Shown here: in pieces, positions 5,403 through 50,881 of the stretch | Numbering within the stretch: position 1 is the first letter of the stretch | How the letters are laid out: the number at the start of each line of letters is the position of its first letter | NCBI GenBank assembly: GCA_964019335.1 | Contig: OZ025675.1 | Coordinates: 186,001-250,000 of the forward strand | DNA length: 64,000 nt | Source of the DNA: Diplonema japonicum | Taxonomy: Eukaryota; Protista; Euglenozoa: Diplonemea | Direction: 5' to 3' | Made by a program: the position numbers and the translations under genes | Notes under the pieces: generated by a model | The model's input: the letters and a program-made list of their open reading frames with translations, nothing else | Told to the model about the DNA's origin: nothing | The model's database searches: none

Positions 5403-7817
5403 TTACCAAGTCGCGGAGCGTGCACTTGACATTACAGCCCGCCCCTCTCTAATATTTCTCATAGCCCATTTCTGAATATCAGTGGGACGCGCAATCTTCG
5501 CGAGTGCAGGGCTTACACTCTTGTCGTTGCTCAACAAAACCCGTTTGAGTGCAGAGGCGATGGGGTCGATGCTGCACCCGGACTCTTCCAACTGGTACAT
5601 CCACTCTTCTTCGTTAATCTCCACAACCGCCCCGACCTCGTAAAGCAAGAGCATATTCTTAATACCAGCTACCTTCAACAAAGTTACTGCCGAAATACAA
5701 TATCTCCCTGCAACACCTTCTGCGACAACAGGCGGTACCAGGATCACCGAACGGGCTAGCGCGGATGACACACATTCTGACACCGAAGAAACGCCCTTTA
5801 GCTCGTGCATAGCAGGACCCTTCATCCCGAACCCTTTGTGAGTAGCAGACCCGAGGTTTCCCGCTAAAAGATCTCCGTGCGACACCGCCATGGCTGGGGT
5901 TGCAATTTGCAACACTCTTGCGGAAGAGGAAATCGCTTTGCAGAATGTGACGGCTCGGAGAATGGCGTCGGTACATCGGCTGCCGACATTCCACGTGAGG
6001 GTGAAGAGAAGAGGGTTTGAGACTGAGAACCCATGGGAGAGCCCTCTCGTCGCCAGAGCTGTCTCGTGAACAATCTCCACTAGACTCCCAAAGTCGTCTG
6101 GGAAAGAAGCGTAAAGCTGTTCAACAAACGACAGCCTCACCACCACACCCTTGTAGCTCTGCATTGATATCAACAGGTTCTGCCCTGCTGCCGCAGCCAC
6201 CGGTACTGTTCGTGACTGGCCTGACTTTTCCGTTGCTCGCGTGCTTCCAGAATTCGCGCTTTCAACATCATCAGTGTCATCGACGAATAAAGTGCTTGGA
6301 AGGTACGCCTTGTACTCCCTCAGACCCTTGATCGCCATGAGTAACCCATCAGTGACACGGGCCACCTCCTGCACCATTATAGGTTTGTACACCGCGTTCA
6401 TATGTGCCTCCGCACCGTCGAGCTCCATCGTCTCCAGATATTGGTTCCCAACAACAAGCTTTTCAAGAGGACGGGCGATCAGGGTCACCTCCAACACAGC
6501 AATGATAAGGTCGACCACGAAGATCACAACAGAGGCGATGATGAGCTGCACCAGTGCCGCGTACACCTTGTCGTTCACAGAGGACACGGAACGCATCCAG
6601 AGAAGCTCGAAAGTGGTGTCAGAGGCGGTATAGACATGGGTGAGTTGCAGGAAGTACTCCCCGCCTTCCAGCGATGTGTCAACGAAGTAGTCCTTCTTGT
6701 ACAATGGGGTGGTCTTGTTCACATCAGAAGCAGCGAAGTACTTCCCGTACTGCACGTGAATGCGCATGTTTGTGGAGGAAAGATCTGCGGTGAAGAAGGT
6801 CCCTCGGGGTCGGACCTTGGAGGAATTCACAGCATCGGAAACAGTGGGGCCGAGGTCATTGGGGTGCAGGACGCAATCAGCACCAGCGTCTTCCGTGCAC
6901 TGGAAACAATGGGTGAAACATTCGGTTTTGACAGCTGCTAAGCCGTCAAACAAGGTATGTGCGAAGACCTGACCTGCAGAAGGGTCCAGCACCACAAGCT
7001 CGGTGTTTGCTGTTTCGAATTCTCTGATGACAGATGTCCACGGTCTGAACATGAACCAGCTAATGAGAACGAGGTGGTACTTCCCTTCAGCCCATGGTGG
7101 GGTGTACCTTATCTCAAATGAGTTGTAGGCATAAGGGGACCCGTCTACTGAGTTCCAGAACATAGTTGGTGTCCATTTCCCTTCCATGGGTGTGTTTTCT
7201 ATATTTTCTATCTCGGATTTCATGTTGATATCCCACGTAACGTTGAGAACGGGGGGAGGCTCCGCTATTTCTGAAAAATGTACTTTGACGCCGGTATCAT
7301 TGTTCAAAGCAGTGAATTTTCGTTTCCAGTTTATTCCGTCGGGGGTCACAACAGGTTTTGTTGCTCCGGAGAACCAATATTCGTCTTCACCGCCTGAAGA
7401 ATTGAAGATTGGGTCGAACCACACTGTTCCTTTGCTGTATCCTTGGGGATCTTCAAAGGCGTTTCTAATTTTGGCAAGCGTGTAGCCGGTTGAGTAGAAT
7501 TCTTCGGATGACTTCAAGGAAGCGAATGCTTGGACACGATACACATTCTCGATGTGTTCCATGCCCATCGAGATGTTGAACACGTCATCCCTGTTGAATA
7601 GGAGGATGCCCTCGTTTGCATTTTTCCGTACTCTGTCTAGCATCCCTGATAGACGGAGCTTTGCACTCTTCGACGCCGCCGCACTGCTTTCTTCCACAGC
7701 AGAGCGAAGGACCGAGATACTCTCCGCGTACAGTAGATACCCTGCCAGGAGGGAGATGAAGGTGGACACAATCGTTGAGACGAAGATGATCAGCTTCGAT
7801 GGGATATGGAGCGGCAT
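5403..7817 (-). CDS. Two-TM receptor pseudo-adenylate cyclase, copy 1 (804 aa)
   Basis: Start at MPLHIPSKL shared with paralogues (upstream poly-K extension rejected); TM1, ectodomain, TM2, HAMP-like linker, LREYKAYLP helix, degenerate cyclase tail ending near EEWMYQL. Confidence 0.9.
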   Translation of the reverse strand: MPLHIPSKLIIFVSTIVSTFISLLAGYLLYAESISVLRSAVEESSAAASKSAKLRLSGMLDRVRKNANEGILLFNRDDVFNISMGMEHIENVYRVQAFASLKSSEEFYSTGYTLAKIRNAFEDPQGYSKGTVWFDPIFNSSGGEDEYWFSGATKPVVTPDGINWKRKFTALNNDTGVKVHFSEIAEPPPVLNVTWDINMKSEIENIENTPMEGKWTPTMFWNSVDGSPYAYNSFEIRYTPPWAEGKYHLVLISWFMFRPWTSVIREFETANTELVVLDPSAGQVFAHTLFDGLAAVKTECFTHCFQCTEDAGADCVLHPNDLGPTVSDAVNSSKVRPRGTFFTADLSSTNMRIHVQYGKYFAASDVNKTTPLYKKDYFVDTSLEGGEYFLQLTHVYTASDTTFELLWMRSVSSVNDKVYAALVQLIIASVVIFVVDLIIAVLEVTLIARPLEKLVVGNQYLETMELDGAEAHMNAVYKPIMVQEVARVTDGLLMAIKGLREYKAYLPSTLFVDDTDDVESANSGSTRATEKSGQSRTVPVAAAAGQNLLISMQSYKGVVVRLSFVEQLYASFPDDFGSLVEIVHETALATRGLSHGFSVSNPLLFTLTWNVGSRCTDAILRAVTFCKAISSSARVLQIATPAMAVSHGDLLAGNLGSATHKGFGMKGPAMHELKGVSSVSECVSSALARSVILVPPVVAEGVAGRYCISAVTLLKVAGIKNMLLLYEVGAVVEINEEEWMYQLEESGCSIDPIASALKRVLLSNDKSVSPALAKIARPTDIQKWAMRNIREGRAVMSSARSATW

Positions 7818-7884
7818 TTTTTCCTTTTTTCTCTTTTTTTTTTTTTTTTTTTTTCTTAAACACCCCAACAAGCCTACCTGTAAC

Positions 7885-7922
<38 letters not shown>

Positions 7923-8216
7923 GAGTGTATTTAGCGGTAAACCCTTGTTTTGTCCGTGCCTTGAAGGATAGACATTGGGACATCTCCTCAAAGTAAGGGA
8001 GTTGGTTTTGCAGTATTCGGGGTCAAGTTAGCAGTTTTCATTCTCAAAAAAAAAAAAAAAAGAACTATGTATACTATGATAGGAAACGAAGTGGTTAACA
8101 ACGGCCCACCGCCAGAGGGGGAAAAAAAAGAAAGGAGGAAAGAAAAAAAAAAAAAAAAGGAATTCACGATGATAGGAAACGAAGTGGTTAGCAACGGCCC
8201 AAAAAAAAAAAAAAAA

Positions 8217-9776: not shown

Positions 9777-10411
9777 GGCGTACGCGTACGCAGCAAAATC
9801 TGAAAAAGTGCGTACGGCGTACGGCTGTGCGTACGGCTCCTTACACCTACAGGTACAGGCTACGGGTTAAAGGGCTTACGTTGGACAAGAGGGGCAAATG
9901 GGAGTGGGGCACAAAAATGGATAGAAGAGAGGGTGGGCGGCAGGCTTCATGCAAACACTTTTACACCCGATTCGTCTCCATCAGACGCTCTCTTTGTCAT
10001 CAGGATCAGGCGCCCTGATGCAGGTCTTCCAACGCCAGTTCTGCCGCACGCCAGTAGTCTCTCACAAACTGCGTGCAGGTGAAACTACGTTTGCTGAAGT
10101 AGAGTTTGACCTGAATTATATCTCTGACAAGAATCAGCTTTGTCAAATCCCAATGGCCGATCTTTGGGCCTTTGACCTTGAACGGACACCGCAGGCCTGA
10201 CCCAAAAGCCTCATGCCTATAAGTCGCAAGACACATGCCCGGTGACTATTGCCTTTGACTTTTCCTGAAGAATTAGAATTTTCCTGAAGACTTTCCAAAA
10301 TGAATGCCGTACGCAAAAAATGCGTACGCGTACGCAGCAAAATTAAAAAAAAGTGCGTACGGCGTACGTTCGAAATACGCGTACGTACGGCCGTACGCCG
10401 ACAACGTAGCC
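9777..10411. mobile_element. GGC-ended MITE, CGTACG family, copy A (left TIR truncated)
   Basis: Inverted copy of 20760-21363; right end CGTACGCCGACAACGTAGCC followed by CTAG; clustered CGTACG subterminal repeats. Confidence 0.8.
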
Positions 10412-10433
10412 CTAGGGGGGGGGGGGGGGGTCC

Positions 10434-12955: not shown

Positions 12956-15418
12956 TCACCATGTGGCTGCCTGTGTGAAGTTCATCACAGCCCGCTTTTC
13001 CCTGATATTCTTCAGAGACCAAGACTGCAAACGGGTGGGATTTTGAATTTCACGGATATCAGGAATCTTCGGGTTGATCAGAACCGACATGAAGGCAACA
13101 ACAAGGGGGTCTTCTATCACAGCATCTTGCAGCTGGTACATCCACTCCTCCTCTTTCGCTTCAATCGGCTGACCAACCTCACTAATCAATATAGGTTCTT
13201 TATTACCCTGAAGATTGAGCAGCGTAACGGCAGATATGTGATATCTCCCAGAAACGCTTTCCGCCACCACCGGCCCGACCAAGATGGTGGGCGTTGGAAA
13301 GCTGTACACGACGACATCTGCAATTGCTGCGATGCCACGTAGTTCGAGCAAGGCCGGGCCTTTCATACCAAAACCTTTTTGTGTTGCGGACCCAAGGTTG
13401 CCTGCTTGGAAGGTACCTTGAGCTACCGACATGATGGGTGTAGCGATGCCCAGTACCCTGTCAGACACTGCGATGAGCTTGCAACACTTAACAGACAGCA
13501 TATCTGACTCAGTGCAGCGAAGGCCCACGTTCCACGTCAGCGTGAAACAGTACGGGTCGTCTACAGCAAAGCTGTGGGTGAGGCCTTTAGTCGACTGTAC
13601 CGCCTCCTGTACAACCTCTACAAGCGCTGCATAGTCATTCGGAAATGTGTGGTACAAATGAGGCGGAAACACCAGCCTCACTGCAGTCCCTTTGTAGTTC
13701 TGCATCTGCATGGACAGGTTCTGACCTGTACCCATTCCTGGTCTTGACATCCTAGCTGCCCTCTCCGACACCGACGCCCTTGATGACTCTCTTGTGTCTT
13801 TTGTGTCTCGGCTTGACAAACAACTTTCGCTCAGTTCGTCAGATTCCTCCACAAATAAAGTGTCCGGGAGGTACGCCTTGTACTCCCTCAGACCCTTGAT
13901 CGCCATGAGTAACCCATCAGTGACACGGGCCACCTCCTGCACCATGATAGGTTTGTACATCGCATACATATGTGCCTCAGCCCCGTCAAGATCCATCGTC
14001 TCCAGATATTGATTCCCAACAACAAGCTTTTCAAGTGGACGGGCGATCAGGGCCACCTCCAACACAGCAATGATAAGGTCGACACCGAAGATCACAACAG
14101 AGGCGATGATGAGCTGCACCAGTGCCGCGTACACCTTGTCGTTCACAGAGGACACGGAACGCATCCAGAGAAGCTCGAAAGTGGTGTCAGAGGCGGTGTA
14201 GACATGGGTGAGACGCAGGAAGTACTCCCCGCCGTCCAGTGACACATCAACGAAGTAGTCCTTCTTGTACAATGGGGTGGTCTTGTTCACATCAGAAGCA
14301 GCGAAGTACTCCCCGTACCGGATGTGGGTACGCATGCTTGTGGAAGAAAGATCTGCGGTGAAGAAGGTCCCTCGGGGTCGGACCTTGGAGGAATTCACAG
14401 CACCGGAAACAGTGGGGCCGAGGTCATTGGGGTGCATCATGCAGTCTTGGCCCGCGAAATCCGCACAGCTGAAGCAAATTGTGTAGCATTCAAACCTGAT
14501 GGCAGGTCCGTTGTAAATAGTGTGTGCAAAGACTTGACCCAGGTGGGAATCCAGTGCCACCAGTTCGGTGTTTGCTGTTTCGAACTCACGGACAACAGCT
14601 GTCCAGGGGCGGAAAGTGAAGAAGCCCATCATGACTAAATTGTACCTCCCATCGGCCCACGGGAGGCTGTAGCGGACGCGGTAGGCATTGTAGGCATAAG
14701 GGGACCCGTCCACAGCATTCCAGAAGTAGGTCGGGGACCAGGTCCCGTTGTAGGGAGTCTCGACCTGCATCCATGTCATGAGCCCCTTCACGTCCTCAAT
14801 GCTGTGCGAGTGGATCACATCGGGTGCATAGACACCTGTGTCGTTGTTCATTGCGGTGTAGAACTTCTTGTGTTCCTTTGTGATGGGATCGAAGCTTGGC
14901 ACGCCTTCTATCACGGTGTCTCCTACTACGTATTCTGACAACCAGTACTTTGCCTCGTTGCCGTCGGAGTCAAGAATAGGGTCGTACCAAACAGACTGCC
15001 TGCTATATCCCTCCGGGTCCTCCCATGGAGGGACGCACCCTGTGCATGACGCGTTCGACCCATACTGTGTCTTTGCCATGAAGTACCCAGTCCCGTAGCC
15101 GTACTCTGTGGAACGGAGTGACGCGAACGCCTGTGATGTGTAGATGTCGTTCACGTGCTTCATCCCCAGCGACACGTTCATTATGTCGTCCCTGCTGAAG
15201 GACAGGATCCCCTCATGTGTTGTTGCCTTCACATCGTCCAGCATCCCTGCCAGCCGAAGCCTTGCACTCTTCGACGCCGCTGCACTGCTCTCTTCCACAG
15301 CAGAGCGAAGGACCGAGATACTCTCTTGGTACAGTAGATACCCTGCCAGGAGGGAGATGAAGGTGGACACAATCGTTGAGACGAAGATGATCAGCTTCGA
15401 TGGGACGTGGAGCGGCAT
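12956..15418 (-). CDS. Two-TM receptor pseudo-adenylate cyclase, copy 2 (820 aa)
   Basis: Full ORF, same architecture; ectodomain type B, tail type Q. Confidence 0.92.
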   Translation of the reverse strand: MPLHVPSKLIIFVSTIVSTFISLLAGYLLYQESISVLRSAVEESSAAASKSARLRLAGMLDDVKATTHEGILSFSRDDIMNVSLGMKHVNDIYTSQAFASLRSTEYGYGTGYFMAKTQYGSNASCTGCVPPWEDPEGYSRQSVWYDPILDSDGNEAKYWLSEYVVGDTVIEGVPSFDPITKEHKKFYTAMNNDTGVYAPDVIHSHSIEDVKGLMTWMQVETPYNGTWSPTYFWNAVDGSPYAYNAYRVRYSLPWADGRYNLVMMGFFTFRPWTAVVREFETANTELVALDSHLGQVFAHTIYNGPAIRFECYTICFSCADFAGQDCMMHPNDLGPTVSGAVNSSKVRPRGTFFTADLSSTSMRTHIRYGEYFAASDVNKTTPLYKKDYFVDVSLDGGEYFLRLTHVYTASDTTFELLWMRSVSSVNDKVYAALVQLIIASVVIFGVDLIIAVLEVALIARPLEKLVVGNQYLETMDLDGAEAHMYAMYKPIMVQEVARVTDGLLMAIKGLREYKAYLPDTLFVEESDELSESCLSSRDTKDTRESSRASVSERAARMSRPGMGTGQNLSMQMQNYKGTAVRLVFPPHLYHTFPNDYAALVEVVQEAVQSTKGLTHSFAVDDPYCFTLTWNVGLRCTESDMLSVKCCKLIAVSDRVLGIATPIMSVAQGTFQAGNLGSATQKGFGMKGPALLELRGIAAIADVVVYSFPTPTILVGPVVAESVSGRYHISAVTLLNLQGNKEPILISEVGQPIEAKEEEWMYQLQDAVIEDPLVVAFMSVLINPKIPDIREIQNPTRLQSWSLKNIREKRAVMNFTQAATW

Positions 15419-15554
15419 TTTGTTTCCTTTTATTTATTTCTTTTGTGTTCGTTCCAACAGCTGAGTAGTAGTTTTGACGAGCAGTGTAGTGTGGGGGGCA
15501 AGGGGTAAAAAAGGAACAAAGTTGGGAGACTCTATTCTTGGAAAAGATAGGATA

Positions 15555-16557
15555 TGAGCTTGTCCGGAAAAAAATGTCAACAAATGACCCTCTTTTGCAA
15601 TGGAAAACCCTCGGAAAACTTCTAAGTACAAAAGTAGTCCGACACCACTTTGTGTGCAGAATTGCAGTCTAAGTGTTCACCATATAGGTCACAATGTACA
15701 TTTCTAAAACGCGCGTGCAAAAACATGCTTTTTAGAATGGTTTTTTTAGTTTAGTTTTTGTCATCCGGAAATTGCAAATGACCCAGGCTCCATATTCCTT
15801 TTTTGTTTTCTTCAATGAAAAGCGAGAAGAAATGGACGCAGATGGGAAATCTGTGAAACTTAGGGGGTCATTTTGGGTGGTTTGGGCTCTTTATCACAAT
15901 TAAAATGGGGTGGGGAAAATACTGCCATTTTGGCCTATTTTAGGCTACAATGCCCATTTTAGGCTAAAATCCCTTAAGGGCCCTTTAAAAGCAAACTTCT
16001 CAATTTATAATTTGTCATGAGTAAGAAAAAAAATGACAAACCTCAGCAGATGGGTAGAGGATGCATGTATGGCCCCAAAGATACCGATGTTGAGCAGGCA
16101 AGTGTTAAGAATTGCCTTTTAGGCCAGTTCCTAAGGGGACGAAAAAGCAAAAAATAGGGTGTAAAAAACCGGTTTTTTGGGGGCTATGCAACGCCATATA
16201 TTTTTCGCTAAGTACTTTAAACAGTAACCCGACCCTGGGTTGTACCCAGGGGTCACAAAGGTGTGTGTTCACCACTTTTATGCACCCTAGGTGCTGCATT
16301 TCAAGCTTTTAAGCTGCATTTTAAATATTTTCCGTCGTTTTTCTGACCTCTGTTTTTCGCTTCCCAGGGGCAACCGGTTGCAAAGCCTGCCACCCTCATG
16401 GCAAAACAAGCATCGCAATTGAAAGAACGGCGTCATGTACACCATATATGTCATCTTCCTATGGTTGCATGCTGCCCTTTTTTTGCTCAACTAATCAAAA
16501 CAAGAAATTTTCGGAGGTGCCCAAAAAAGTGTTGACATTTTTTTTCGGACGAGCTCA
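15555..16557. mobile_element. Non-autonomous TIR element with TA TSD (Tc1/mariner-like)
   Basis: ~28-bp TIR TGAGCTYGTCCGRAAAAAAATGTCAACA; TA on both flanks; inverted partial copy at 24985-26296. Confidence 0.75.
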
Positions 16558-16723: not shown

Positions 16724-17151
16724 CGATAAAATTTCAGTGTGCATGGGGGTGCTCACTGTTCAGGTAGAAATTCACACTAATCGGTCACCGTTCTGCGGTT
16801 GCTGTCTGGTGCCTGCGGTGGCTGTTTATCGCGATGAGATGGACGGCATCTGGGCGAGAAACATTGCTTGGAGTCGTGCTAGGTAGGGGGGGGTTTGGCT
16901 CGAGGAGAAGAGTGGTCTCCTATCGTAGCCGTGTGCCGTCGGGCCCCCAAGATGTCGAAGGGTATGCACCCTTGATTTGGCGTTGGCGGGGAAGGCTGAC
17001 CTTCCACAGCGTGCTGAGCATTTCTGGATGCGACCCAAGATGTATCGCATCCTTGCGGCCTTCTCCGTGAGCAGGTCTTGATCGTCGAGGGGACCTATGA
17101 GTGACCGGCGGGTGGTCTGCTCATAGTCTATGGCGAGTTCCATTGTCGTGA
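16724..17151 (-). repeat. Repeat R5 copy 2
   Basis: Homologous to 11541-11968. Confidence 0.7.
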
Positions 17152-17531: not shown

Positions 17532-20000
17532 TCACCATGTGGCTGCCTGTGTGAAATTCATCACAGCTCGGTTTTCCCTGATGTTATTCAGAGACCAAGA
17601 CTGCAGGTTGGTTGGGTTCTGAATCTCAGGGACATTGGGCAAGGCACCAGGGTGAAGCGAAGACGCGAAGGCAACAACAAGGGGGTCTTCTGTCACCGCA
17701 TCTTGCAGCTGGTACATCCACTCCTCCTCTTTTGTTTCAACAGCATGACCAACCTCACTAATCAATATTGGGTTCTTAGTACCCTCAAGTTTGAGCAGCG
17801 TCACAGCAGTCACCATAAACCTCCCGGAGATACTTTCGGTTATCAAAGGCCCGACCAGGATAGTGGGTGCTGGAAGGGTAGAAACGATGGCATCTGCTAT
17901 TGCGGAGACTGCTCGGAGTTCGAGCAAGGCCGGGCCTTTCATACCAAAACCTTTTTGTGTTGCGGACCCAAGGTTGCCTGCTTGGAAGGTGCCTTGAGCT
18001 ACCGACATGATAGGTGTAGCGATGCCCAGTACCCTGTCAGACACTGCGATAAGCTTGCAGAATTTTATTGAACGCAAGACCGACTCAGCGCAGCGAAGGC
18101 CCACGTTCCATGTCAGCGTGAAGGCGAGGGGGTCGTACACAGCAAAGCCATGAGCAAGGCCTTTAGTCGACTGTACCGCCTCCTGTACAACCTCTACAAG
18201 CGCTGCATAGTCATTCGGAAATGTGTGGTACAAATGAGGCGGAAACACCAGCCTCACTGCAGTCCCTTTGTAGTTCTGCATCTGCATGGACAGGTTCTGA
18301 CCTGCAACCCCGCCCTTCGACAGCTTCGTTCGCTCAGACATCATCGTCACCTTAGACGACCTTGACTTCACTTTTGAATTCTTTGTGCCGAGGCTTGAAG
18401 CACAGCTTTCGCTCAGTTCGTCAGATTCCTCCACAAATAAAGTGTTCGGGAGGTACGCCTTGTACTCCCTCAGACCCTTGATCGCCATGAGTAACCCATC
18501 AGTGACACGGGCCACCTCCTGCACCATCACAGGTTTGTACATCGCATTCATGTGTGCCTCAGCCCCGTCAAGATCCATCGTCTCCAGATATTGGTTCCCA
18601 ACAACAAGCTTTTCAAGAGGACGGGCGATCAGGGTCACCTCCAACACAGCAATGATAATGTCGACCACGAAGATCACAACAGAGGCGATGATGAGCTGCA
18701 CCAGTGCCGCGTACACCTTGTCGTTCACAGAGGACACGGAACGCATCCAGAGAAGCTCGAAAGTGGTACCAGCAGCGGTGTAGACATGGGTGAGACGCAG
18801 GAAGTACTCCCCGCCGTCCAGCGATGTGTCAACGAAGTAGTCCTTCTTGTACAATGGGGTGGTCTTGTTCACATCAGAAGCAGCGAAGTACTCTCCGTAT
18901 CGGATGTGGATGCGCATGCTTGTGGAAGAAAGATCTGCGGTGAAGAAGGTCCCTCGGGGTCGGACCTTGGAGGAATTCACAGCACCGGAAACAGTGGGGC
19001 CGAGGTCATTGGGGTGCATCATGCAGTCTTGGCCTGCGAAATCCGCACAGCTGAAGCAAATCGTGTAGCATTCAAACCTGATGGCAGGTCCGTTGTAAAT
19101 AGTGTGTGCAAAGACTTGACCCAGGTAGGGGTCCAGTGCCACCAGTTCGGTGTTTGCTGTTTCGAACTCACGGACAACAGCTGTCCAGGGGCGGAACATG
19201 AAGAAGCCCATCATGACCAAATTGTACCTCCCATCGGCCCACGGGAGGCTGTAGCGGACGCGGTAGGCATTGTAGGCATAAGGGGACCCGTCCACAGCAT
19301 TCCAGAAGTAGGTCGGGGACCAGGTCCCGTTGTAGGGAGTCTCGACCTGCATCCATGTCATGAGCCCCTTCACGTCCTCAATGCTGTGCGAGTGGATCAC
19401 ATCGGGTGCATAGACACCTGTGTCGTTGTTCATTGCGGTGTAGAACTTCTTGTGTTCCTTTGTGATGGGATCGAAGCTTGGCACGCCTTCTATCACGGTG
19501 TCTCCTACTACGTATTCTGACAACCAGTACTTTGCCTCGTTGCCGTCGGAGTCAAGAATGGGGTCGTACCAAACAGACTGCCTGCCATATCCCTCCGGGT
19601 CTTCCCATGGAGGGACGCACCCTGTGCATGACGCGTTCGACCCATACTGTGTCTTTGCCATGAAGTACCCAGTCCCGTAGCCGTACTCTGTGGAACGGAG
19701 TGACGCGAACGCCTGTGATGTGTAGATGTCGTTCACGTGCTTCATCCCCAGCGACACGTTCATTATGTCGTCCCTGCTGAAGGACAGGATCCCCTCATGT
19801 GTTGTTGCCTTCACATCGTCCAGCATCCCTGCCAGCCGAAGCCTTGCACTCTTCGACGCCGCTGCACTGCTTTCTTCCACAGCAGAGCGAAGGACCGAGA
19901 TACTCTCCGCGTACAGTAGATACCCTGCCAGGAGGGAGATGCAGGAGGACACAATCGTTGAGACGAAGATGATCAGCTTCGATGGGACGTGGAGCGGCAT
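17532..20000 (-). CDS. Two-TM receptor pseudo-adenylate cyclase, copy 3 (822 aa)
   Basis: Full ORF; ectodomain B, tail Q. Confidence 0.92.
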   Translation of the reverse strand: MPLHVPSKLIIFVSTIVSSCISLLAGYLLYAESISVLRSAVEESSAAASKSARLRLAGMLDDVKATTHEGILSFSRDDIMNVSLGMKHVNDIYTSQAFASLRSTEYGYGTGYFMAKTQYGSNASCTGCVPPWEDPEGYGRQSVWYDPILDSDGNEAKYWLSEYVVGDTVIEGVPSFDPITKEHKKFYTAMNNDTGVYAPDVIHSHSIEDVKGLMTWMQVETPYNGTWSPTYFWNAVDGSPYAYNAYRVRYSLPWADGRYNLVMMGFFMFRPWTAVVREFETANTELVALDPYLGQVFAHTIYNGPAIRFECYTICFSCADFAGQDCMMHPNDLGPTVSGAVNSSKVRPRGTFFTADLSSTSMRIHIRYGEYFAASDVNKTTPLYKKDYFVDTSLDGGEYFLRLTHVYTAAGTTFELLWMRSVSSVNDKVYAALVQLIIASVVIFVVDIIIAVLEVTLIARPLEKLVVGNQYLETMDLDGAEAHMNAMYKPVMVQEVARVTDGLLMAIKGLREYKAYLPNTLFVEESDELSESCASSLGTKNSKVKSRSSKVTMMSERTKLSKGGVAGQNLSMQMQNYKGTAVRLVFPPHLYHTFPNDYAALVEVVQEAVQSTKGLAHGFAVYDPLAFTLTWNVGLRCAESVLRSIKFCKLIAVSDRVLGIATPIMSVAQGTFQAGNLGSATQKGFGMKGPALLELRAVSAIADAIVSTLPAPTILVGPLITESISGRFMVTAVTLLKLEGTKNPILISEVGHAVETKEEEWMYQLQDAVTEDPLVVAFASSLHPGALPNVPEIQNPTNLQSWSLNNIRENRAVMNFTQAATW

Positions 20001-36437: not shown

Positions 36438-36844
36438 TGTTACCCTCCTTCCCAGTGTACCTGTGAGATGTCTGAAAGAAATGGAGGGGAAAAAATGAAA
36501 GTGATGTAAAAGTAATACCCCTTTTATATATTTCTGGAAAGAAAGAAAGAGCGACAGTATTTGTGTTTCAGATGGATATTCGTGTGGTATACCTTGTGCC
36601 TTGTTCAAGTCAACCCTTAACTAGAGTTTACGAATCATGTTTTAGCCAGGGCTGGCTGTAACGAAAAAGGAAAGGATAATTCAGTCTTTAGCGCGTATAA
36701 AATCATTTAGCGAAAGATAAATAATTGTTTACCATTGTTAAAGGAAGCTGTTGCGAGACGCCCCCTTGCTAGGCACCAGATTTCACACCAACCCCCATTA
36801 TCCCAAAAAAAGAAAAAGGTATGAATTAAAGGAACTCGTTGTGA

Positions 36845-37630
36845 GACAGCACTCGTGTCGTCCACAGCAGAGCGAAGGACCGAGATACTCTCCGCGTACA
36901 GCAAAAACCCTGCCAGGAGGGAGATGAAGGTAATCGTTGAGACGAAGATGACGTGGAGCGGCATTCTTCTTCTTTTTATGCGACTGAGTTTGGAAATGTA
37001 AGTTGGTGATAAGTGGGAAATAAGGACCCTGCAAACGAAAAGAAAATCTTCGATTGTCACGCGAGAACCATCGCCGACTCTGAAATGACCTGTAAAGCGT
37101 CATCACCTTCTTATGGGGGAGGAGGGGGCCTCCGAGCCTTTCCTCTTGCGTCTAAGGGATGCGTGAGGTCGGTACACCCTCACCTCACCCTCTATGCTGA
37201 GGAGAACTGCTTTCCTCGAAGGCCACCATGAAGGAGTCCCCAATGGTCTTCACCTCGTACCCGTTGTGCTCAGAAAGACACTCCCACATCACATTGTTGT
37301 GAACCTTCAGACCCTCCCTCATCCCCTCAGGGCAGGCCTCCCATGTTGCCGTCGATCCTTGGATGTCGGTGAAGAAAAGGGCCGCTGTCCCCGTCATGAG
37401 ACCAGACGCAGCAACCATTTCTTCCTGCAGCCGTGGCTGACCTCTGTTGCTATGGGCAAGGAACTTACCGCCTCCAGATGATCTCAGAGTTGTTGCTGGA
37501 GTTGAGCTGACCCACAACTTTGCTTCCAAGCCAGTACTTGGCTTCGGAACCGTTGACCTCAAGGACAGAGTCGTACCAGACGTACTGCCGACGACCGTAG
37601 CCTTCAATGTCTTCGCAATTTGGTACCCCC
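36845..37630 (-). pseudogene. Shredded composite pseudogene derived from copies 7 and 8
   Basis: 37470-37625 ectodomain pieces and 37215-37460 cyclase piece of copy 7 type; 36965-37150 matches upstream DNA of copy 8; 36845-36965 deleted 5' CDS with copy-8 diagnostic VDDTSA. Confidence 0.85.
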
Positions 37631-37715
37631 TTCGCACTCGCACTGTGAACAAGGCTATGGGTGAGCAGGTCCTAAAAAAGAAGAGACAAAAGTCCGCAAA
37701 GGAAACAATGTGTCA

Positions 37716-40112
37716 CTACCATACTGCTGCTTGTGAAAAAGACATGACGGCTTGCCCTTCTGAGATGTTCTTCATCGACCAGGTTTGGAGGTCAGTCGGT
37801 TCCAGAATATCAACAACTTCAGCCTCTGACTCTGGTTGTGCCAAAATCTTTTTTAGCATGTCACCAACAGGATCCACCGTATATGCTTCCTCAAGTTGGT
37901 ACATCCACTCCTCCTCCCTCCCTACAACCTCGTGTTTAACCTCATGTACTATAAACTGATTTTTCAACCCATCGATATCAATGATTGTCACTGCTTGTAT
38001 TCTATAGTTATTTGCCACTCCCTCAGCTACAGGGGGTGACACCAAGGTGACCGAGCGAGCTAATGTCTTTGAAACAAAATCAGCCACAGCAGAGATGCCT
38101 CTCAGCTCAAGCAGGGGAGAGCCGTTCATCCCGAAACCCTTGTGCGTCGCGGACCCGAGGTTCCCTGCAGTGAACTCCCCGTGGACCACCGCCATGGAAG
38201 GCACTGCGATTGCGGACACCTTCTCAGAGCATGACATCAACTTGCAGAAGGTCACAGCTTTCATGATTGCATCAGAGCAGCGAAGTCCCATGTTCCACGT
38301 GAGGGTGAAGACGAGAGGATCGGAGACGGAGAACCCATGGGCGATGCCCCTGGTTGCTGTGGCTAACTCTTGCATCGTTTCAACAAGTGCTCCGAAGCAG
38401 TCAGGGATATCGGAATCTCTAGTTATGACAGACAGCCTCACCACAGTGCCTTTGTATTTTTGAAGGTGCATCGAAAGGTTCTGCCCTGCAACGGGCGCCG
38501 ACCTTTGACTCACTGAAGTTGTATCCACGGTGCTCCTTTCATCGTTTTGGGTGTCGATGTCTGCGTCTTCCTTGTTGTCAACATCAATGAACAAGGTGTT
38601 CGGAAGGAAGGCCTTGTACTCCCTCAGACCCTCGATCGCCATGAGTAACCCATCAGTTACACGGGCCACCTCCTGCACCATTACAGGTTTGTACATCGAC
38701 TTCATATGTGCCGTAGCATCATCCAACTCCATTGTTTCAAGAAACCTGTTCCCAACAACAAGCCTCCCCAGTGGACGGGCGATCAGAACAATCTCCAACA
38801 CAGCAATGATAAGGTCGACCACGAAGATCACAACAGAGGCGATGATGAGCTGCACCAGTGCCGCGTACACCTTGTCGTTCACAGAGGACACGGAACGCAT
38901 CCAGAGAAGCTCGAAAGTGGTGTCAGAGGCGGTGTAGACATGGGTGAGACGCAGGAAGTACTCCCCGCCGTCCAGTGATCCATCAACGAAGTAGTCCTTC
39001 TTGTACAATGGGGTGGTCTTGTTCACATCAGAGGCAGCGAAGTACTCCCCGTATCGGATGTGAATGCGCATGTTTGTGGAGGAAAGATCTGCGGTGAAGA
39101 AGGTCCCTCGGGGTCGGACCTTGGAGGAATTTACAGCACCGGAAACAGTGGGGCCAAGTTCACTGGGGTGCAGGAAGCACTCCGCACTCTGGCGATTATC
39201 ACAGTTGAAGCATCTTGTGTAGCATTCAAACTTGATGGCAGGTCCATTGTGAATGGTGTGCGCAAAGACCTGACCAGCAGAAGAGTCCAGTATGAGGAGC
39301 TCGGTGTTTGCTGTTGAGAACTCACGGATGACGGATGACCAGGGACGGAACGTGAACCAACTATTCAAGACGATCTCGTAAGGAGTGCCACCTGGTGCCA
39401 CGGGGAGGGTGTGCCTGGAGTGGTACCCTGTATAAAGATAAGGAGACCCGTCAATAGCGTTCCAGAAGTAGGTCGGGGTCCACTCCCCTTCTTTCGGGAC
39501 TGTTGCCATCATGTTCACCCACACCCTTGGGTCTTCAACAAACGTCTCAGAAAACACCTCTGGAGCAGGTGCTCCCGTCTCGTTGTCCATTGCTGTGTTG
39601 TACCGCGTCCAGATGATCTCAGAGTTGTTGCTGGAGTTGAGCTGCCCCATGGCAGTACCTCCAAGCCAGTACTTGGCTTCGGAACCGTTGACCTCAAGGA
39701 CAGGGTCGTACCAGATGAACCGACCACCGTAGCCTTCAATGTCCTCCCAAGGGGGGGACCCAAGCTTCGCAATGTGGTACCCTCCTCCGTAGTGGTACTC
39801 TGTCGACCGAAGAGCTGCAAACTTGTGTGCACTATAGACCTGGCTTATGTACTCAAGCCCTAACGAGAGGTTCATCACATCACTCCTGTTGAAGAGGAGG
39901 AGCCCTTCAGTTGCTGTGTCAACTACGCTTTCCAACATCCCTGCCAGACGAAGCCTTGCGCTTTTGGACGCCCCAGCACTCGTGTCGTCCACAGCAGAGC
40001 GAAGGACCGAGATACTCTCCGCGTACAGTAGATACCCTGCCAGGAGGGAGATGAAGGTGGACACAATCGTTGAGACAGAGATGAACAGTTTCGATGGGAC
40101 GTGGAGCGGCAT
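37716..40112 (-). CDS. Two-TM receptor pseudo-adenylate cyclase, copy 8 (798 aa)
   Basis: Full ORF; ectodomain C (like copy 7), tail type S. Confidence 0.92.
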   Translation of the reverse strand: MPLHVPSKLFISVSTIVSTFISLLAGYLLYAESISVLRSAVDDTSAGASKSARLRLAGMLESVVDTATEGLLLFNRSDVMNLSLGLEYISQVYSAHKFAALRSTEYHYGGGYHIAKLGSPPWEDIEGYGGRFIWYDPVLEVNGSEAKYWLGGTAMGQLNSSNNSEIIWTRYNTAMDNETGAPAPEVFSETFVEDPRVWVNMMATVPKEGEWTPTYFWNAIDGSPYLYTGYHSRHTLPVAPGGTPYEIVLNSWFTFRPWSSVIREFSTANTELLILDSSAGQVFAHTIHNGPAIKFECYTRCFNCDNRQSAECFLHPSELGPTVSGAVNSSKVRPRGTFFTADLSSTNMRIHIRYGEYFAASDVNKTTPLYKKDYFVDGSLDGGEYFLRLTHVYTASDTTFELLWMRSVSSVNDKVYAALVQLIIASVVIFVVDLIIAVLEIVLIARPLGRLVVGNRFLETMELDDATAHMKSMYKPVMVQEVARVTDGLLMAIEGLREYKAFLPNTLFIDVDNKEDADIDTQNDERSTVDTTSVSQRSAPVAGQNLSMHLQKYKGTVVRLSVITRDSDIPDCFGALVETMQELATATRGIAHGFSVSDPLVFTLTWNMGLRCSDAIMKAVTFCKLMSCSEKVSAIAVPSMAVVHGEFTAGNLGSATHKGFGMNGSPLLELRGISAVADFVSKTLARSVTLVSPPVAEGVANNYRIQAVTIIDIDGLKNQFIVHEVKHEVVGREEEWMYQLEEAYTVDPVGDMLKKILAQPESEAEVVDILEPTDLQTWSMKNISEGQAVMSFSQAAVW

Positions 40113-40159
40113 TTTTCTTTATTCTTATGCGACTGGGTTTGGAAATGTAAGTTGGTGAA

Positions 40160-40225
40160 CCTGAAGAGGGAAATAAGGACCCTGCAAAAGAAAAAGAAAA
40201 AAAGGAAGAAAGAAAAAGAGAAAGT
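40160..40225 (-). promoter_or_regulatory. Polypyrimidine tract with AG acceptors upstream of copy 8 (putative trans-splice site)
   Basis: Minus strand pyrimidine run ending TTTTGCAG then CCCTCTTCAG about 50-70 nt before ATG; similar tracts precede copies 4, 5 and 7. Confidence 0.45.
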
Positions 40226-40777
40226 CGTAAGAAATCTTACGATTGTTACGCCGACGCTGAGTTGACCTGTAAAGCGTCATCACCTTCTTAAGGGGGGGAG
40301 GGCGATGTCAGACCCACTCGGAGTCTATGAGCCTTTTGCGTCTCTCCGTATCTCTCCCACAGGGCAGTTCGTGTTTTTTAAGTTTCGTTTGTGCGAATGA
40401 GAGTTGTTTATATATATGAGTGAAGGAGGTCTTTCAACTCCTTCGGTGGTCTTGCCCTCCTCCTCAGCTTGACTGCCTTGGCGGGGAAAGAAAAACCTCG
40501 CCGCATTTGGCCGTTTCTCTTTCTTTTCTTCTTTGATTAAATATGTCTTAAACTATTCGAACCAACAATTACAGACACATGGGCAGCTCCACGGTAAATA
40601 TAAACACAAAGTGAGACCCCTTCCCCCCACTCCTTGTTCCCTTATACTACTTGCAAAAAAAAAAAAGATTATGATTCCTTTTTTTATTCTTATTCGTTGT
40701 GGTGGTGGTGGTGCTGGGGGGGATCTTCGTCCGGAAAAGAAATGCGGACTTTTTAAAACAAAAGGTATCCAAAAGAA

Positions 40778-42569: not shown

Positions 42570-42577
42570 TATATTAA

Positions 42578-46337: not shown

Positions 46338-48452
46338 AAGGGGCCCCCTGAATAATCCCTTTATTTGGGCAGTGGGGGGGGGGGAGGGGGGGTGTTTGGG
46401 CTCCAAAAAAAAAGAATTATTTGGAATACATTTATTTGGGTTGTACTTATTTGGGCTGGGGGGCCTGCCACATGGATAACAGGGAGCGGGGCTTGGAGCA
46501 CTTCTTGGTCTTGTGTTCTTGCCAGTTTTTCTCCCAGGCTGTAGAGAACCCACAAACGTCGCAGACAATCCGCCTGGTTTTGGCGTTAGGTGGTTGCTGG
46601 GAGGTTGCGGGGGTCTGAGAGGCCGCTGGGGCTTGAGAAGCTTCTCGGGAGTCTGTCAGGGCTTGAGAAACTGCAAGGGCTTGGGAGGCTGGAGTCTCGG
46701 GTGTAGTGTCCGTTGTCACACCCGCAACAACGTTCTGTGCTGCACTGTCTAAAGGGTCCGACTCCTTCAAAGTGCTTACTTCGCCAAGTGCTCTTAGCTG
46801 TATGGTCTCCACGGAACTACCTGGTAGGTAGCCGAGAGACCGCATACAGCTAAAGGTGTCGAGCAGTTGCATGACCTTCTCATGTGCCTGCCCTACCCAC
46901 AGTGCCACGTTGATACGGCGCTCTGCTGCAGTCATCGACCCACGTCCCGCCTCAGTTGCTTTGGCATGCCACAGCCCTCCTAACCCCTCAAAATGGAGTT
47001 TAAATAACGAAAAATAAAAAACGTCTAAAAGTTGTAGATCCGTGGTAAGCCCACCAGGGATCACAGCTGGTATAATCTTTGCAGCCTTCATGGCCGCCTT
47101 GCTTGCATCGCTGATGTGGCCTCTGGCTGAGTCCAAAATCAGCAGCACCGTCGCATCTTCAGGCACCGCAGCACGCAAGTATGGGATGTAGACATTAATA
47201 AAAAAGTCAGAACCCACAACTCCACTTTCGCATGCTGCGACCTGCACCCCTTTGCACTTGTCTATTTCTCCCTGGGACGGGAGCCTGTCCTTCTTCAGCA
47301 ACACGATGGGCTCTGGTTGCTTGTCGGTGGTGTTGATGATGGTGATGATCGCACTGGCGAGCCTTTTGGTGTCGGCGGCAGCGATCGTGGGGTCGTCTAT
47401 GTCGGCATCCTCCCCAACCGGGCCGACGACGCGGAGGAGGCGTTTGCCGAGTGGGCAGAAAGGCGACTCGTCCATGTTGCAAATTATTGCAGTCGGACAG
47501 AGTCGGTGGACGGAGTGCAGGAACTTAAAGAAGCGTGCAGCTTCAAGCTTCCTCTCCGCCACCGGTTTCCCCTTCAGCCTGCTGACCTTCTTCTCACTAA
47601 GGTTTTGCCTCTTGAGGAAGGAGGCGAAGACCTTGTCAGACAGCACACAATTGCTGTTGACGGGGTCGGACTGGCGGATTTTCTTTTGGAGAAGTTGTCG
47701 GGCCTGCAGGTTGGTGCAGGGCTTTTTTTCTTCCCGTAATTTGCGGATCTCGTCCCCCGCTTCTTTTTCCTGGTCAGGAAACTGTGGGGGCCTCCCGCCT
47801 CCTGGGGCCCTCCTCCTCACCCTCGCCTTGGCGTCGCGGCTATTGAACAAGTCGATGTACGCCTGTTCATTTGCCATAATACTGGCAAGGTCACGCCTGC
47901 GAAGGCGTACTTCCGCGACACCGCCTCCGCACCCGCCGTCTTGCACAAGGCAATTATCCACAACTTCTCCACCACGGTGTACTCACGGCGTCTCCTCTTG
48001 TTTTCATGTACTTCTTCCTGCTCTTGCTCCTGCTCCTGCTCCTCCTCCTCAGGCTCTTCACCCGCCAACCCGTCTCCGAACGGGTTTGCGTTCAACTGCC
48101 CGTCGTACACGTACCAGTCCTCATCCGTAGGGGGTAAGAAGGCCATTTTAAAGAGGTTTAAGATTGATAGTCTGATGAACAGTGCCTGGGCTTGGCATTA
48201 CATTCTGAATAAAATAAACTGCCTTCCACTTCTTGGTCGGGCGTCAGCCACGTCTACAGCTCTACAGCTCTACAGCTCTACAGCTCTACAGCTCTGCAGC
48301 CCCCCCCCCCCCCCCCCCCCGTCCCCTCAAAAAAAAAAAAAAGGAGATCGGGAATTATTTGGGAAATTTGGAGCGGAAAAATCCCCGAAAAAAAAAAGAA
48401 TTATTTGGGAAAAAACACATTATTTGGGAGGGAATTATTCGGGCCCCCCCTT
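46338..48452 (-). mobile_element. pogo/Tigger-like DNA transposon
   Basis: Imperfect TIR AAGGGG..CCC.GAATAAT.CCCT; TA at 46336-37 and 48453-54; encodes DDE_1-type transposase. Confidence 0.85.
46447..48146 (-). pseudogene. pogo-like DD35D transposase split by one frameshift near 47890
   Basis: HTH-like RRREYTVVEKL..AVSRKY in the 48146 ORF; CENP-B-type GRPPQFP..FLKRQNLS, NMDESP, ILDSARGH, LQLLDV in the 47961 ORF; C-terminal CxxC..H..C. Confidence 0.85.
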
Positions 48453-50881
48453 TACAATAGGTTTGAAGCTTGCTGGGTGAAATTCATCACTGCACGCCCC
48501 TCTTCAATATTCGAGATGGCCCATCTTTGTATGTCGGTAGGTTTTTCGATGTTTACAATGGGTTTTATGCTGGGGTTAATCAGAATCTGCTTTAAAGCTT
48601 CCGCCACAGGGTCGAGCACCTCTGCTTCCTGCAGCTGATACATCCATTCTTCAACATTTGAAGTGACTATGTGGCCCACCGCATTCACAACGATCGGGGC
48701 CTTGCTGCCTGTGGTCCTAAGCAGTGCAACGGCGGACAGACCGTATCGGCCCATAATACCCTCACAGACTGCAGGGGATACCAAAGTGATAGTTTGAGGA
48801 AGCTTACTAACTACAACATCGGCCACCGCGCATATTTCTCCCAATTCTTGCAACGAAGCACCCGTCATGCCAAATCCTCTTTGGTTGAAAGATCCCAGAT
48901 TCCCAGCTTGGTATACCCCATGCACCACCGACATAACAGGAGTAGCAATTGACGCTACTCTTTGAGAGCCGCTCAAAAACTTGCAAAAGCCTACCCCGCG
49001 GGTGATTGACTCAACGCAGCGGAGTCCGATATTCCATGTAAGGGTGAAATTAAACGGATTTGCAACTGAGAAGCCGTGAGCCAGGCCTTTGGAGGACGTC
49101 ACCGCCTCGTTCACCACCTCAACAAGTCCCGCGAAACCTTCCGGAAAGTTCACATACATATGCGCGGTAAAACAGAGTTTTACCACAGTTCCTTTGTAGC
49201 TTTGCATTGTCATCAAGACGTTCCCGGTAGGAGATAGGACCTTGGATTGCTTCGCTTTTGAATGCGCGTCAGTAGATTCACTTGTTTCTGTTAGGGCGAC
49301 AATTTCGCTTCCGGCTTTGATGCTTGCATCGTCGTCTTCATTCACAAATAACGACTGTGGTAGGAATGCCTTGAACTCCCTCAGGCATTTGATCGCCATG
49401 AGTAACCCATCAGTGAGCAGTTTCACCTCCTGCACCATCACAGGTTTGTACATCGACTTCATATGTGCCGTAGCATCATCCAACTCCATTGTCTCAAGAA
49501 ACCTGTTCCCAACAACAAGCCTCCCCAGTGGACGGGCGATCAGAACAATCTCCAACACAGCAATGATAAGGTCAACCACGAAGATCACAACAGAGGCGAT
49601 GATGAGCTGCACCAGTGCCGCGTACACCTTGTCGTTCACAGAGGACACGGAACGCATCCAGAGAAGCTCGAAAGTGGTACCAGCAGCGGTGTAGACATGG
49701 GTGAGTCGCAGGAAGTACTCCCCGCCGTCCAGCGATGTGTCAACGAAGTAGTCCTTCTTGTACAATGGGGTGGTCTTGTTCACATCAGAAGCAGCGAAGT
49801 ACTCTCCGTACCGTACATGGGTACGCATGTTTGTGGAGGAAAGATCTGCGGTGAAGAAGGTCCCTCGGGGACGAGGCTTGGAGGCGTTCACAGCACCGGA
49901 CACAGTGGGGCCGAGGTCGTTGGGGTTCATGACACAGTCTTTTCCAGCATAGTCAGTGCAGCTGAAACAGGCAGTGAAGCATTCGGGCTTTAACGCAGCA
50001 AGACCCTCGTACACAGTGCTGGTGAAGACCTGAAACGCAGAGCAGTCAAGAACTACCAAATGAGTGCTTGCTGCTTCGAACTCACGGATGACAGATGTCC
50101 AGGGGCGGTACATGAAGTAGCCCACCAAGACAAGGTCATGTGTACCTTCAGCCCATGGTGGGGTGTACCTTATAAAAAATGAGTTGTAGGCATAAGGGGA
50201 CCCGTCTACTGAGTTCCAGAAGTAGGTTGGTGACCATGTCCCGTTGTAGGGTATGCTTTGCATCCACTCGTAACGGTAAGTCACGTTGGTTTCCCACGTC
50301 AGGTTTAGTACTGGCGGGGCGAGCGGGAGATCGGCTGTAGGTACGAGGACGCCTGTCTCGTTGTCCTTTGCCGTGAAGGAGCGTTGCCACCGGACGGCCT
50401 TGCCGTCAACCACCGTGGGGAGCGTGTTCCCTGAGATCCAGAATTTATCGTTGTTCCCATTGCCGTCCAATATCGGCTCGTACCACACCGCGTGGCGGCT
50501 GTAGCCTTCAGGGTCGTCCCATGGTTTGTGCTTTTTAAAGAGAAAATATCCTACTGAATATAACTCATCTGAAGACCTGAGAGTTGCGAAGGCCTGTGCG
50601 GCATACACCTTCTCAACGTGGCGGAGTCCTAGTGACACATTTAGGACATCGTCGCGGTTGAACATGAGCCTAGCCTCGTACGCGCTCTTAGTGATTTCAT
50701 TTAGCATCCCTGCCAGACGAAGCCTTGCGCTTTTGGACACCGCTGCACTGTTCTCGTCCACAGCAGAGCGAAGGACCGAGATACTCTCCGCGTACAGTAG
50801 ATACCCTGCCAGGAGGGAGATGAAGGTGGACACAATCGTTGAGACGAAGATGATCAGCTTCGATGGGACGTAGAGAGGCAT
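48452..50881 (-). CDS. Two-TM receptor pseudo-adenylate cyclase, copy 9 (809 aa)
   Basis: Start MPLYVPSKL; ectodomain most like copy 1, tail most like copies 2/3. Confidence 0.92.
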   Translation of the reverse strand: MPLYVPSKLIIFVSTIVSTFISLLAGYLLYAESISVLRSAVDENSAAVSKSARLRLAGMLNEITKSAYEARLMFNRDDVLNVSLGLRHVEKVYAAQAFATLRSSDELYSVGYFLFKKHKPWDDPEGYSRHAVWYEPILDGNGNNDKFWISGNTLPTVVDGKAVRWQRSFTAKDNETGVLVPTADLPLAPPVLNLTWETNVTYRYEWMQSIPYNGTWSPTYFWNSVDGSPYAYNSFFIRYTPPWAEGTHDLVLVGYFMYRPWTSVIREFEAASTHLVVLDCSAFQVFTSTVYEGLAALKPECFTACFSCTDYAGKDCVMNPNDLGPTVSGAVNASKPRPRGTFFTADLSSTNMRTHVRYGEYFAASDVNKTTPLYKKDYFVDTSLDGGEYFLRLTHVYTAAGTTFELLWMRSVSSVNDKVYAALVQLIIASVVIFVVDLIIAVLEIVLIARPLGRLVVGNRFLETMELDDATAHMKSMYKPVMVQEVKLLTDGLLMAIKCLREFKAFLPQSLFVNEDDDASIKAGSEIVALTETSESTDAHSKAKQSKVLSPTGNVLMTMQSYKGTVVKLCFTAHMYVNFPEGFAGLVEVVNEAVTSSKGLAHGFSVANPFNFTLTWNIGLRCVESITRGVGFCKFLSGSQRVASIATPVMSVVHGVYQAGNLGSFNQRGFGMTGASLQELGEICAVADVVVSKLPQTITLVSPAVCEGIMGRYGLSAVALLRTTGSKAPIVVNAVGHIVTSNVEEWMYQLQEAEVLDPVAEALKQILINPSIKPIVNIEKPTDIQRWAISNIEEGRAVMNFTQQASNLL

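Follow-up and report, generated by a model that had tools for sequence, protein, structure and literature searches.

Homogenised blocks and a probable exchange of sensor and output modules in a tandem receptor array of Diplonema japonicum

We describe a tandem array of receptor genes in the diplonemid Diplonema japonicum and suggest that it is very probably best explained by segmental concerted evolution, with sensor and output segments exchanged across the homogenised blocks. The array was analysed in a 64,000-nt window (positions 186001-250000 of contig OZ025675.1, labelled C28; window coordinates count from 1), in which nine intact, co-oriented open reading frames (ORFs) of 798-954 codons, c1 to c9, are all encoded on the minus strand, from 5403 to 50881. 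Their products have a common order of parts: a first transmembrane helix (TM1), a dCache-like ectodomain, a second transmembrane helix (TM2), a cytosolic signalling helix, a disordered acidic linker and a domain with the class III cyclase fold. These genes seem to lack introns, and exchange takes place within a continuous ORF. Two segments, an N-terminal block (N-block) and a central, constant block, are nearly identical from gene to gene, and they flank an ectodomain segment and precede a tail that have both diverged strongly. We present this as a clean and quantified example of concerted evolution by segments in the diplonemids, a eukaryotic lineage in which the biology of the nuclear genome has hardly been explored, and as an indication that recombination within a tandem array can rewire the coupling between an extracellular sensor and an intracellular output.

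Two homogenised blocks in nine paralogues

The first-pass annotation of this stretch had reported that all nine paralogues share two near-identical blocks, synonymous sites included, and this is what we find. Synonymous divergence is given here as pS (Nei-Gojobori synonymous differences per site, taken in a sliding window along the codon alignment of the nine copies and averaged over 36 pairs), and it stands at 0.05-0.3 in the blocks as against 0.5-0.7 elsewhere. Mean pS is 0.05-0.06 over alignment codons 0-30 and up to 0.44 by codon 45, runs at 0.44-0.66 through the variable ectodomain, comes down to 0.05-0.22 over codons 345-465 and 0.21-0.31 over codons 465-525, and reaches 0.57-0.76 in the linker and tail. 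Block divergence is hence not equal to that of the flanking segments but far lower, by a factor of 5-10. The N-block is present as claimed, at a length of ~42-45 codons and not the ~55 first proposed: similarity sets in at the A of the ATG, and the sequence upstream is unalignable among most copies. The central block (HPNDLGP...LREYKA), nine copies of which were also recovered by independent repeat detection in the window, measures exactly 187 codons (561 nt) with zero indels in 9/9 copies and terminates in a LREYKA(Y/F)LP motif. Among the nine genes the nucleotide identity of the N-block is 90-100% and that of the central block 87-98%, compared with 52-99% for the ectodomain and 34-100% for the tail. 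The variable segments have ratios of nonsynonymous to synonymous divergence (dN/dS) of 0.2-0.6 in pairwise comparisons, and these comparisons, the only dN/dS estimates made, give no sign of gene-wide positive selection in them.

Copies beyond the window, which we name by contig and position in kb (e.g. C28_161k, C82_428k), were sought by searching the DNA of the entire assembly for the central block, and they bring the family to at least 26 genes. The core tandem array comprises at least 14 genes on C28, at ~129-236 kb, and continues beyond the window, with five extra full copies just upstream at 129, 161, 167, 170 and 182 kb; two more divergent copies stand on C28 at 88 and 91 kb, and other members of the family are found on C87, C117 (2), C82 (2) and C91 (5). 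Among the 14 array members pS is 0-0.18 in the N-block and 0.04-0.28 in the central block, whereas between the array and paralogues on four other contigs it is 0.37-0.91 and 0.33-0.72, even though these off-contig paralogues are 58-86% identical to c4 in the protein sequence of the blocks (and 36-63% in the ectodomain). Since block pS is saturated off the contig despite a conserved protein, the nucleotides of the blocks are not intrinsically constrained. Central-block pS also grows with distance along C28, from 0.127 (<6 kb) through 0.136, 0.183 and 0.221 to 0.341 (>80 kb), with 0.58 for other contigs, and a Mantel test of central-block pS against chromosomal distance gives rho 0.65-0.78 (p=0.0002); the divergence of ectodomains and tails is weakly correlated with distance. 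The four-gamete test is failed by 43% of the site pairs among 81 biallelic informative sites of the central block, the pairwise homoplasy index (PHI) gives p<=0.0005 there with neighbouring sites more compatible than distant ones, and the site matrix consists of short runs common to changing sets of copies. Taken together, the off-contig pS, the decay with distance and the mosaic sites are classical signatures of interlocus gene conversion in a tandem array, and the annotation's proposal of homogenisation through recombination or gene conversion is supported by a divergence that is low locally, high off the contig and rising with distance.

It could be argued instead that the blocks are conserved purely by selection, reaching into synonymous sites through RNA structure, codon use or an overlapping element, and that the odd pairings of modules described below stem from a few ancient unequal crossovers. 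In favour of such a view, no other part of the protein is as well conserved as these two blocks when other species and other contigs are compared. However, off-contig paralogues show saturated synonymous divergence in the very same blocks, block divergence follows physical distance, and the mosaic sites and the PHI result argue against a tree-like history. These three lines have already largely refuted selection as the sole cause, and we hold it to be very improbable.

Conversion mediated by cDNA was also considered, as homology starts at the ATG, and was rejected: it predicts that homology should start at the splice-acceptor of the 5' untranslated region (UTR) and run to the poly(A) site. We note, separately, a second array of the family on C91 (306-330 kb), where four copies have N-block, central block and tail at pS 0.00-0.04 and the ectodomain of C91_330k is diverged from those of the other array copies (pS 0.26-0.27).

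Exchange of ectodomains and tails across the blocks

The reticulate pairings that had been described for c2 to c8 all hold by nucleotide identity: ectodomain B occurs with tail Q (c2, c3) or tail R (c4, c5), ectodomain B' with tail R (c6), and ectodomain C with a cyclase (c7) or with tail S (c8). The ectodomains of c2-c5 are 96-99% identical, and their tails fall into two groups that are 84% (c2/c3) and 93.5% (c4/c5) identical internally and 55% identical to each other, the tail of c2 standing at 55% to those of c4-c6. The ectodomain of c6 is 81-82% identical to those of c2-c5, and its tail is 100% identical to that of c5; c7 and c8 have ectodomains that are 90% identical, and the tail of c8 is 34% identical to that of c7 and 67% to tail R. 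The 'A-type' ectodomains of c1 and c9 do come with different tails, as had been stated, but their grouping is weak, with 63% identity and a tree support of 80/53.

Separate maximum-likelihood trees for ectodomain, central block and tail are strongly incongruent, and they conflict with high support, opposing clades reaching up to 100/100. In approximately unbiased (AU) tests, clades of one segment are rejected by the data of another with p from 1e-3 to 1e-152 overall: tail data reject the ectodomain clades c2-c5 (p 1e-53), c7/c8/C28_129k (p 1e-54) and C28_161k/170k/182k (p 9e-152), and ectodomain data reject the tail clades formed by C28_161k and 167k (p=5e-6) and by the five active-cyclase genes (p=6e-83). 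Identity profiles drop at columns ~560-570, the 3' edge of the central block, where tails are swapped, and at ~340-375, its 5' edge, where ectodomains are swapped. Between the units c2/c3 and c4/c5, homology starts within 3-7 nt of the ATG and stops in the central block. The clearest cases come from the copies upstream of the window. C28_161k, 170k and 182k carry one ectodomain type (pS 0.02-0.04) with three different tails, of which one is an active cyclase, and C28_161k and 167k have upstream flank, central block and tail in common (pS 0.04) with ectodomains at saturated divergence, which implies that one of these two had its ectodomain replaced, between N-block and central block. The same mosaic also occurs on C117 (one ectodomain, different tails) and on C91.

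A tract of exactly 913 nt, with zero differences between its copies in c5 (26826-27738, minus strand) and c6 (30169-31081, minus strand), spans the acidic linker, the tail, the stop codon and 63 nt of the 3' UTR. Both of its ends are abrupt, the homologous neighbouring sequence being only 88-95% identical, and the flank patches downstream are 88% identical. The tract is a recent patch of non-reciprocal gene conversion and not a crossover. Between c8 and c7, moreover, lie two remnants. One is c7-like and internally deleted (37209-37629, minus strand; tblastn): its part at 37468-37629 matches ectodomain residues 118-170 (83% to c7; tblastn), its part at 37209-37466 covers the last stretch of the constant block and the first of an active cyclase (91% amino acid and 94.6% nucleotide identity to 34642-34899), and the deletion has brought the end of the central block next to ectodomain residue ~170. 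The second remnant is c8-like and comprises 5' flank and N-block (36836-37126, minus strand; blastn and tblastn), stopping at about the end of the N-block; within it, 36847-37046 matches 39974-40200 (84%) and 37072-37126 matches 40249-40302 by blastn, and N-block residues 1-50 are matched by tblastn. Both remnants resemble scars that illegitimate or unequal events have left behind. One could also have read the cyclase fragment downstream of c8 as a sign that tail S was inserted into a c7-like gene; this reading was rejected, since tblastn shows a separate, internally deleted remnant.

On another contig, the tail of C82_428k groups with the c2/c3 tail (support 97/96), and its 3' flank has a 116-nt patch that is 88% identical to window positions ~17040-17150, downstream of c3. 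These two likenesses hint at an interchromosomal exchange or a transposition of a tail together with its 3' flank.

We posit that homologous recombination between nearby copies repeatedly overwrites two segments, mostly by short, non-reciprocal conversion tracts and at times by longer ones. The overwritten segments would be those under the strongest constraint at the protein level, namely the TM1 signal anchor (~45 codons) and the unit of membrane-proximal Cache module, TM2 and signalling helix (187 codons), which by virtue of that constraint stay similar enough to go on recombining, while the membrane-distal module and the tails would be too diverged to recombine or would be held distinct by selection. 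A tract that starts in a block and crosses a variable segment would move a whole ectodomain or tail into another gene, and longer tracts, or unequal crossovers anchored in the blocks, would thus carry a sensor or an output segment. Ectodomain replacement would use the N-block and the central block as its two homology arms, and tail replacement would use the central block as its 5' arm, with reticulate combinations of sensor and output as the outcome. We infer this recombination pathway from the patterns above, as we do the ligand-binding role of the distal module and any adaptive value of rewiring.

Several points weigh against this account or limit its reach. The c5/c6 tract has its 5' end not in a block but ~25 codons past it, within the acidic linker. 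GC content at third codon positions is no higher in the blocks than in other segments or in copies outside the array, and hence gives no signal of GC-biased conversion. As both blocks are the best-conserved protein segments across species and other contigs, purifying selection contributes alongside conversion, in shares that are not exactly separable. The clades submitted to the AU tests were picked after the trees had been inspected. Lastly, the linkage of ectodomain to tail in each gene rests on the published high-fidelity (HiFi) assembly, as Logan contigs end within the repeated block and leave the joint between ectodomain and tail unbridged.

This last point bears on the possibility that the chimeric pairings are artefacts of assembly or of haplotype switching in a repetitive array, all the more so as the deposited assembly is described as 'not fully phased' (PMC13598402) and the reads were checked by way of just these contigs. 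We regard such artefacts as very improbable nonetheless. The assembly (62.3 Mb in 118 chromosome-scale scaffolds) was made with hifiasm and Hi-C from 102-fold HiFi coverage, amounting to 7.93 Gb in 840,000 reads with a mean of ~9 kb, and has a quality value (QV) of 59 (PMC13598402); the repeated block has only 561 nt, 87-98% identical between copies, and no exact repeat exceeds 913 nt. Mosaics of this kind are also present on C117, on C91 and in the part of the array that lies outside the window, and exact pieces of the c6 ectodomain and of both its flanks occur in a sequencing run of an independent study, in Logan contigs that break in the repeat.

The annotation had gone further and viewed the constant blocks as hinges of a cassette-like system of receptor diversification. 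The hinges are supported on an evolutionary timescale, as the end points of exchange lie at or near block edges, although not every tract ends in a block; the system is not. A dedicated, programmed process, in which the blocks would be signals for high-frequency somatic or clonal recombination in the manner of antigenic variation, could draw on the cassette-like layout, with variable segments between constant arms and homology starting exactly at the ATG, on the difference-free 913-nt tract, which marks at least one very recent event, and on the scars between c8 and c7. Yet all nine copies (9/9) are complete ORFs with their own start codons, partial copies amount to the two small remnants, and there is no layout of an expression site and silent donors. 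No variant joints were seen, in Logan contigs that lose rare variants and, breaking in the repeat, are blind to such joints. Exchanged segments differ at pS 0.02-0.3, and events overall range from pS 0.00 to ~0.3, which means that they are distributed over evolutionary time; homogenisation depends on distance, as passive concerted evolution predicts; and the process also removes diversity, the four adjacent genes c2-c5 now bearing one ectodomain. A programmed system thus seems to us very improbable, and a by-product of this sort is what one would expect concerted evolution to yield in a tandem array.

Receptor architecture and known systems

The structure that AlphaFold2 predicts for c4 from the family alignment, with a predicted local distance difference test score (pLDDT) of 76, shows TM1 continuing into a long helix (residues 7-75), an alpha/beta module (~109-299), a cysteine-rich stretch (300-345), a second, beta-sheet module (352-421), TM2 with cytosolic helices (423-516), the disordered acidic linker (518-554) and the alpha/beta domain of the tail (557-735); the ectodomain modelled alone reaches a pLDDT of 80.5 and a predicted template-modelling (TM) score, pTM, of 0.78. 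In a Foldseek search this ectodomain model finds the dCache ligand-binding domains of PctD, TlpQ, MkcA, TlpA, TlpC, McpU and HK1S-Z, its top matches having E-values (E) of 2e-7 to 1e-3 and TM scores of ~0.5-0.56, and it has the dCache layout of a long N-terminal helix and two PAS-like modules between two transmembrane helices. The likeness is one of fold only: Pfam dCache_1 has no match in the ectodomains even at E<=10, and the family alignment, run as a profile against the PDB, gave no match. On the model, the constant block (c4 residues 329-515) corresponds to the membrane-proximal Cache module, TM2 and the signalling helix, and the variable segment is the membrane-distal, presumably ligand-binding module, which is the usual ligand site in dCache receptors (PMC4822843). 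Ligand specificity would hence probably reside in the variable distal module, with the constant part as a shared transducer.

The tail of c4, searched in the same way, matches the class III cyclase domains of CyaB, Cya2, CyaC, Rv1900c and RhGC with TM scores of 0.7-0.82. By sequence, the cyclase family is matched by c7 only in the window and by four active-type copies outside it; the c7 tail hits Pfam Guanylate_cyc (PF00211) at E=6e-31 and has as its closest solved structures the catalytic domains of Trypanosoma brucei GRESAG4.1 and 4.3 (1FX2/1FX4; E=5e-29), and Pfam searches of whole proteins and of isolated ectodomains and tails find no domain besides this cyclase. Active and pseudo-tails are aligned by hhalign over 32 columns (probability 93%), in the region of the catalytic Asn and Arg only. 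There, active tails read FGNTVNKAARMEG and pseudo-tails LGSATxKGFGMKG, with Asn replaced by His or Gln and Arg by Gly. The motif is kept in c7; both catalytic residues are replaced in the eight other tails, which have no Pfam match and which, on this sequence evidence, appear to be catalytically degenerate pseudo-cyclase domains. After its cyclase domain c7 continues for ~240 residues (in 33573-34200), a stretch that is conserved in all five active-type copies and could be a putative second, degenerate cyclase-like domain.

It is also conceivable, if rather unlikely, that the receptors assemble combinatorially and dimerise through the homogenised blocks, with many of the pseudo-cyclase sensors pairing with the few members that have an active cyclase. 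In that case concerted evolution would be favoured for keeping all paralogues compatible as partners, and the blocks would also enable new combinations of sensor and output. Were this so, the array would evolve as a single, integrated and modular sensing device.

Gene conversion is established for tandem arrays of euglenozoans, the trypanosomatids, among them the receptor-type adenylate cyclase GRESAG4 (Jackson 2007, PMC1855330). The diplonemid array resembles the GRESAG4 arrays in belonging to the Euglenozoa, in its co-oriented tandem arrangement, in conversion between members, in having parts of the repeat unit with different histories, and in a homologous catalytic domain. It differs in that homogenisation is limited to two intragenic blocks that flank strongly diverged modules, in its dCache-like ectodomain, in its mostly degenerate cyclase domains and in its free-living host. 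In trypanosome cyclases the ectodomain is of the periplasmic-binding-protein type. The paired immune-receptor clusters of vertebrates (KIR, LILR, Ly49 and CEACAM), moulded by domain shuffling, gene conversion and unequal crossing-over, in which the same ectodomain has come to be joined to alternative signalling tails through recombination, offer a second likeness, being tandem clusters where ectodomain types are re-paired with tails through conserved segments; those genes, however, have introns, shuffle exons and serve immunity, unlike the apparently intronless diplonemid genes. We would also distinguish the array from the cassettes of antigenic variation (gonococcal pilE/pilS, Borrelia vlsE, the mosaic VSG genes of trypanosomes), which combine one expression site with silent, partial donors and switch at high frequency within a clone. 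Variable segments exchanged by gene conversion between constant homology arms are common to both, but the nine diplonemid copies are all complete ORFs, and no division into silent donors and an expression site was seen among them. With the bacterial dCache chemoreceptors and sensor kinases (PctD, TlpQ, TlpA, TlpC, HK1S-Z), finally, the array has in common the ectodomain fold, in which a long helix is followed by distal and proximal PAS-like modules between transmembrane helices; it is set apart by the lack of detectable sequence similarity to Pfam or PDB entries, by its eukaryotic host and by an output with the cyclase fold.

What emerges is a diplonemid receptor family that combines a dCache-like sensor with a GRESAG4-type cyclase or, oftener, with a catalytically degenerate cyclase fold. 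Our literature search turned up no paper describing this family or array, and homologues in EukProt come to just three transcriptome proteins, taken as diplonemid, at 30-58% identity. The process itself is textbook, and the value of the case lies in the example and the annotation, in a new lineage and receptor family, and not in a new principle.

The nine genes and their surroundings

All nine genes being on the minus strand, each begins at its highest coordinate with the N-block. At the low end of the array c1 (5403-7817) has its own ectodomain type and a pseudo-cyclase tail, with the N-block at 7683-7817, the variable ectodomain at 6867-7682, the constant block at 6306-6866 and linker and tail at 5403-6305. 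Ectodomain B and tail Q make up c2 (12956-15418; N-block 15284-15418, ectodomain 14435-15283, constant block 13874-14434, tail 12956-13873) and c3 (17532-20000; N-block 19866-20000, ectodomain 19017-19865, constant block 18456-19016, tail 17532-18455). The same ectodomain is followed by tail R in c4 (21834-24251), the copy used for the structural model, with N-block 24117-24251, ectodomain 23268-24116, constant block 22707-23267 (residues 329-515) and tail 21834-22706, and in c5 (26886-29327; N-block 29193-29327, ectodomain 28344-29192, constant block 27783-28343, tail 26886-27782), and tail R comes with ectodomain B' in c6 (30229-32673; N-block 32539-32673, ectodomain 31696-32538, constant block 31135-31695, tail 30229-31134).

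Ectodomain C is carried by the next two genes. In c7 (33573-36437; N-block 36303-36437, ectodomain 35469-36302, constant block 34908-35468, tail 33573-34907) it goes with a cyclase domain typical of class III in sequence and the ~240 residues beyond it, and in c8 (37716-40112; N-block 39978-40112, ectodomain 39171-39977, constant block 38610-39170, tail 37716-38609) with pseudo-cyclase tail S. The last copy in the window, c9 (48452-50881), has ectodomain and tail types of its own (N-block 50747-50881, ectodomain 49928-50746, constant block 49367-49927, tail 48452-49366).

The gap of 8.3 kb between c8 and c9 contains an ORF of 504 amino acids (46447-47961, minus strand) with a DDE_1 transposase domain (Pfam E=2.6e-5) and a C-terminal motif resembling a zinc finger, probably a pogo/Tc1-like transposon that was inserted in the array. 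Adjoining the array is an ORF of 532 amino acids (51666-53264, minus strand) that resembles ionotropic glutamate receptors (Pfam Lig_chan, E=3.4e-16). Just outside it, a gene of 576 amino acids (55893-57623, minus strand) encodes a multi-pass membrane N-terminus and a LRTYRPYLP motif, and its C-terminal region aligns with the pseudo-cyclase tails at 18% identity with an invariant EW.Y motif; this match suggests the same output module on a different sensor scaffold.

Inverted repeats of 190-650 nt at 82-94% identity connect different intergenic spacers (9777-10420 with 20751-21351, and 15552-16123 with 25006-26298), and they are probably dispersed fragments of mobile elements outside the duplication unit. 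Long runs of A or of pyrimidines, lastly, stand directly upstream of most ATGs (e.g. 7818-7990, 32674-32800, 50882-51040), and they appear as K- or F-rich extensions in a mechanical list of ORFs.

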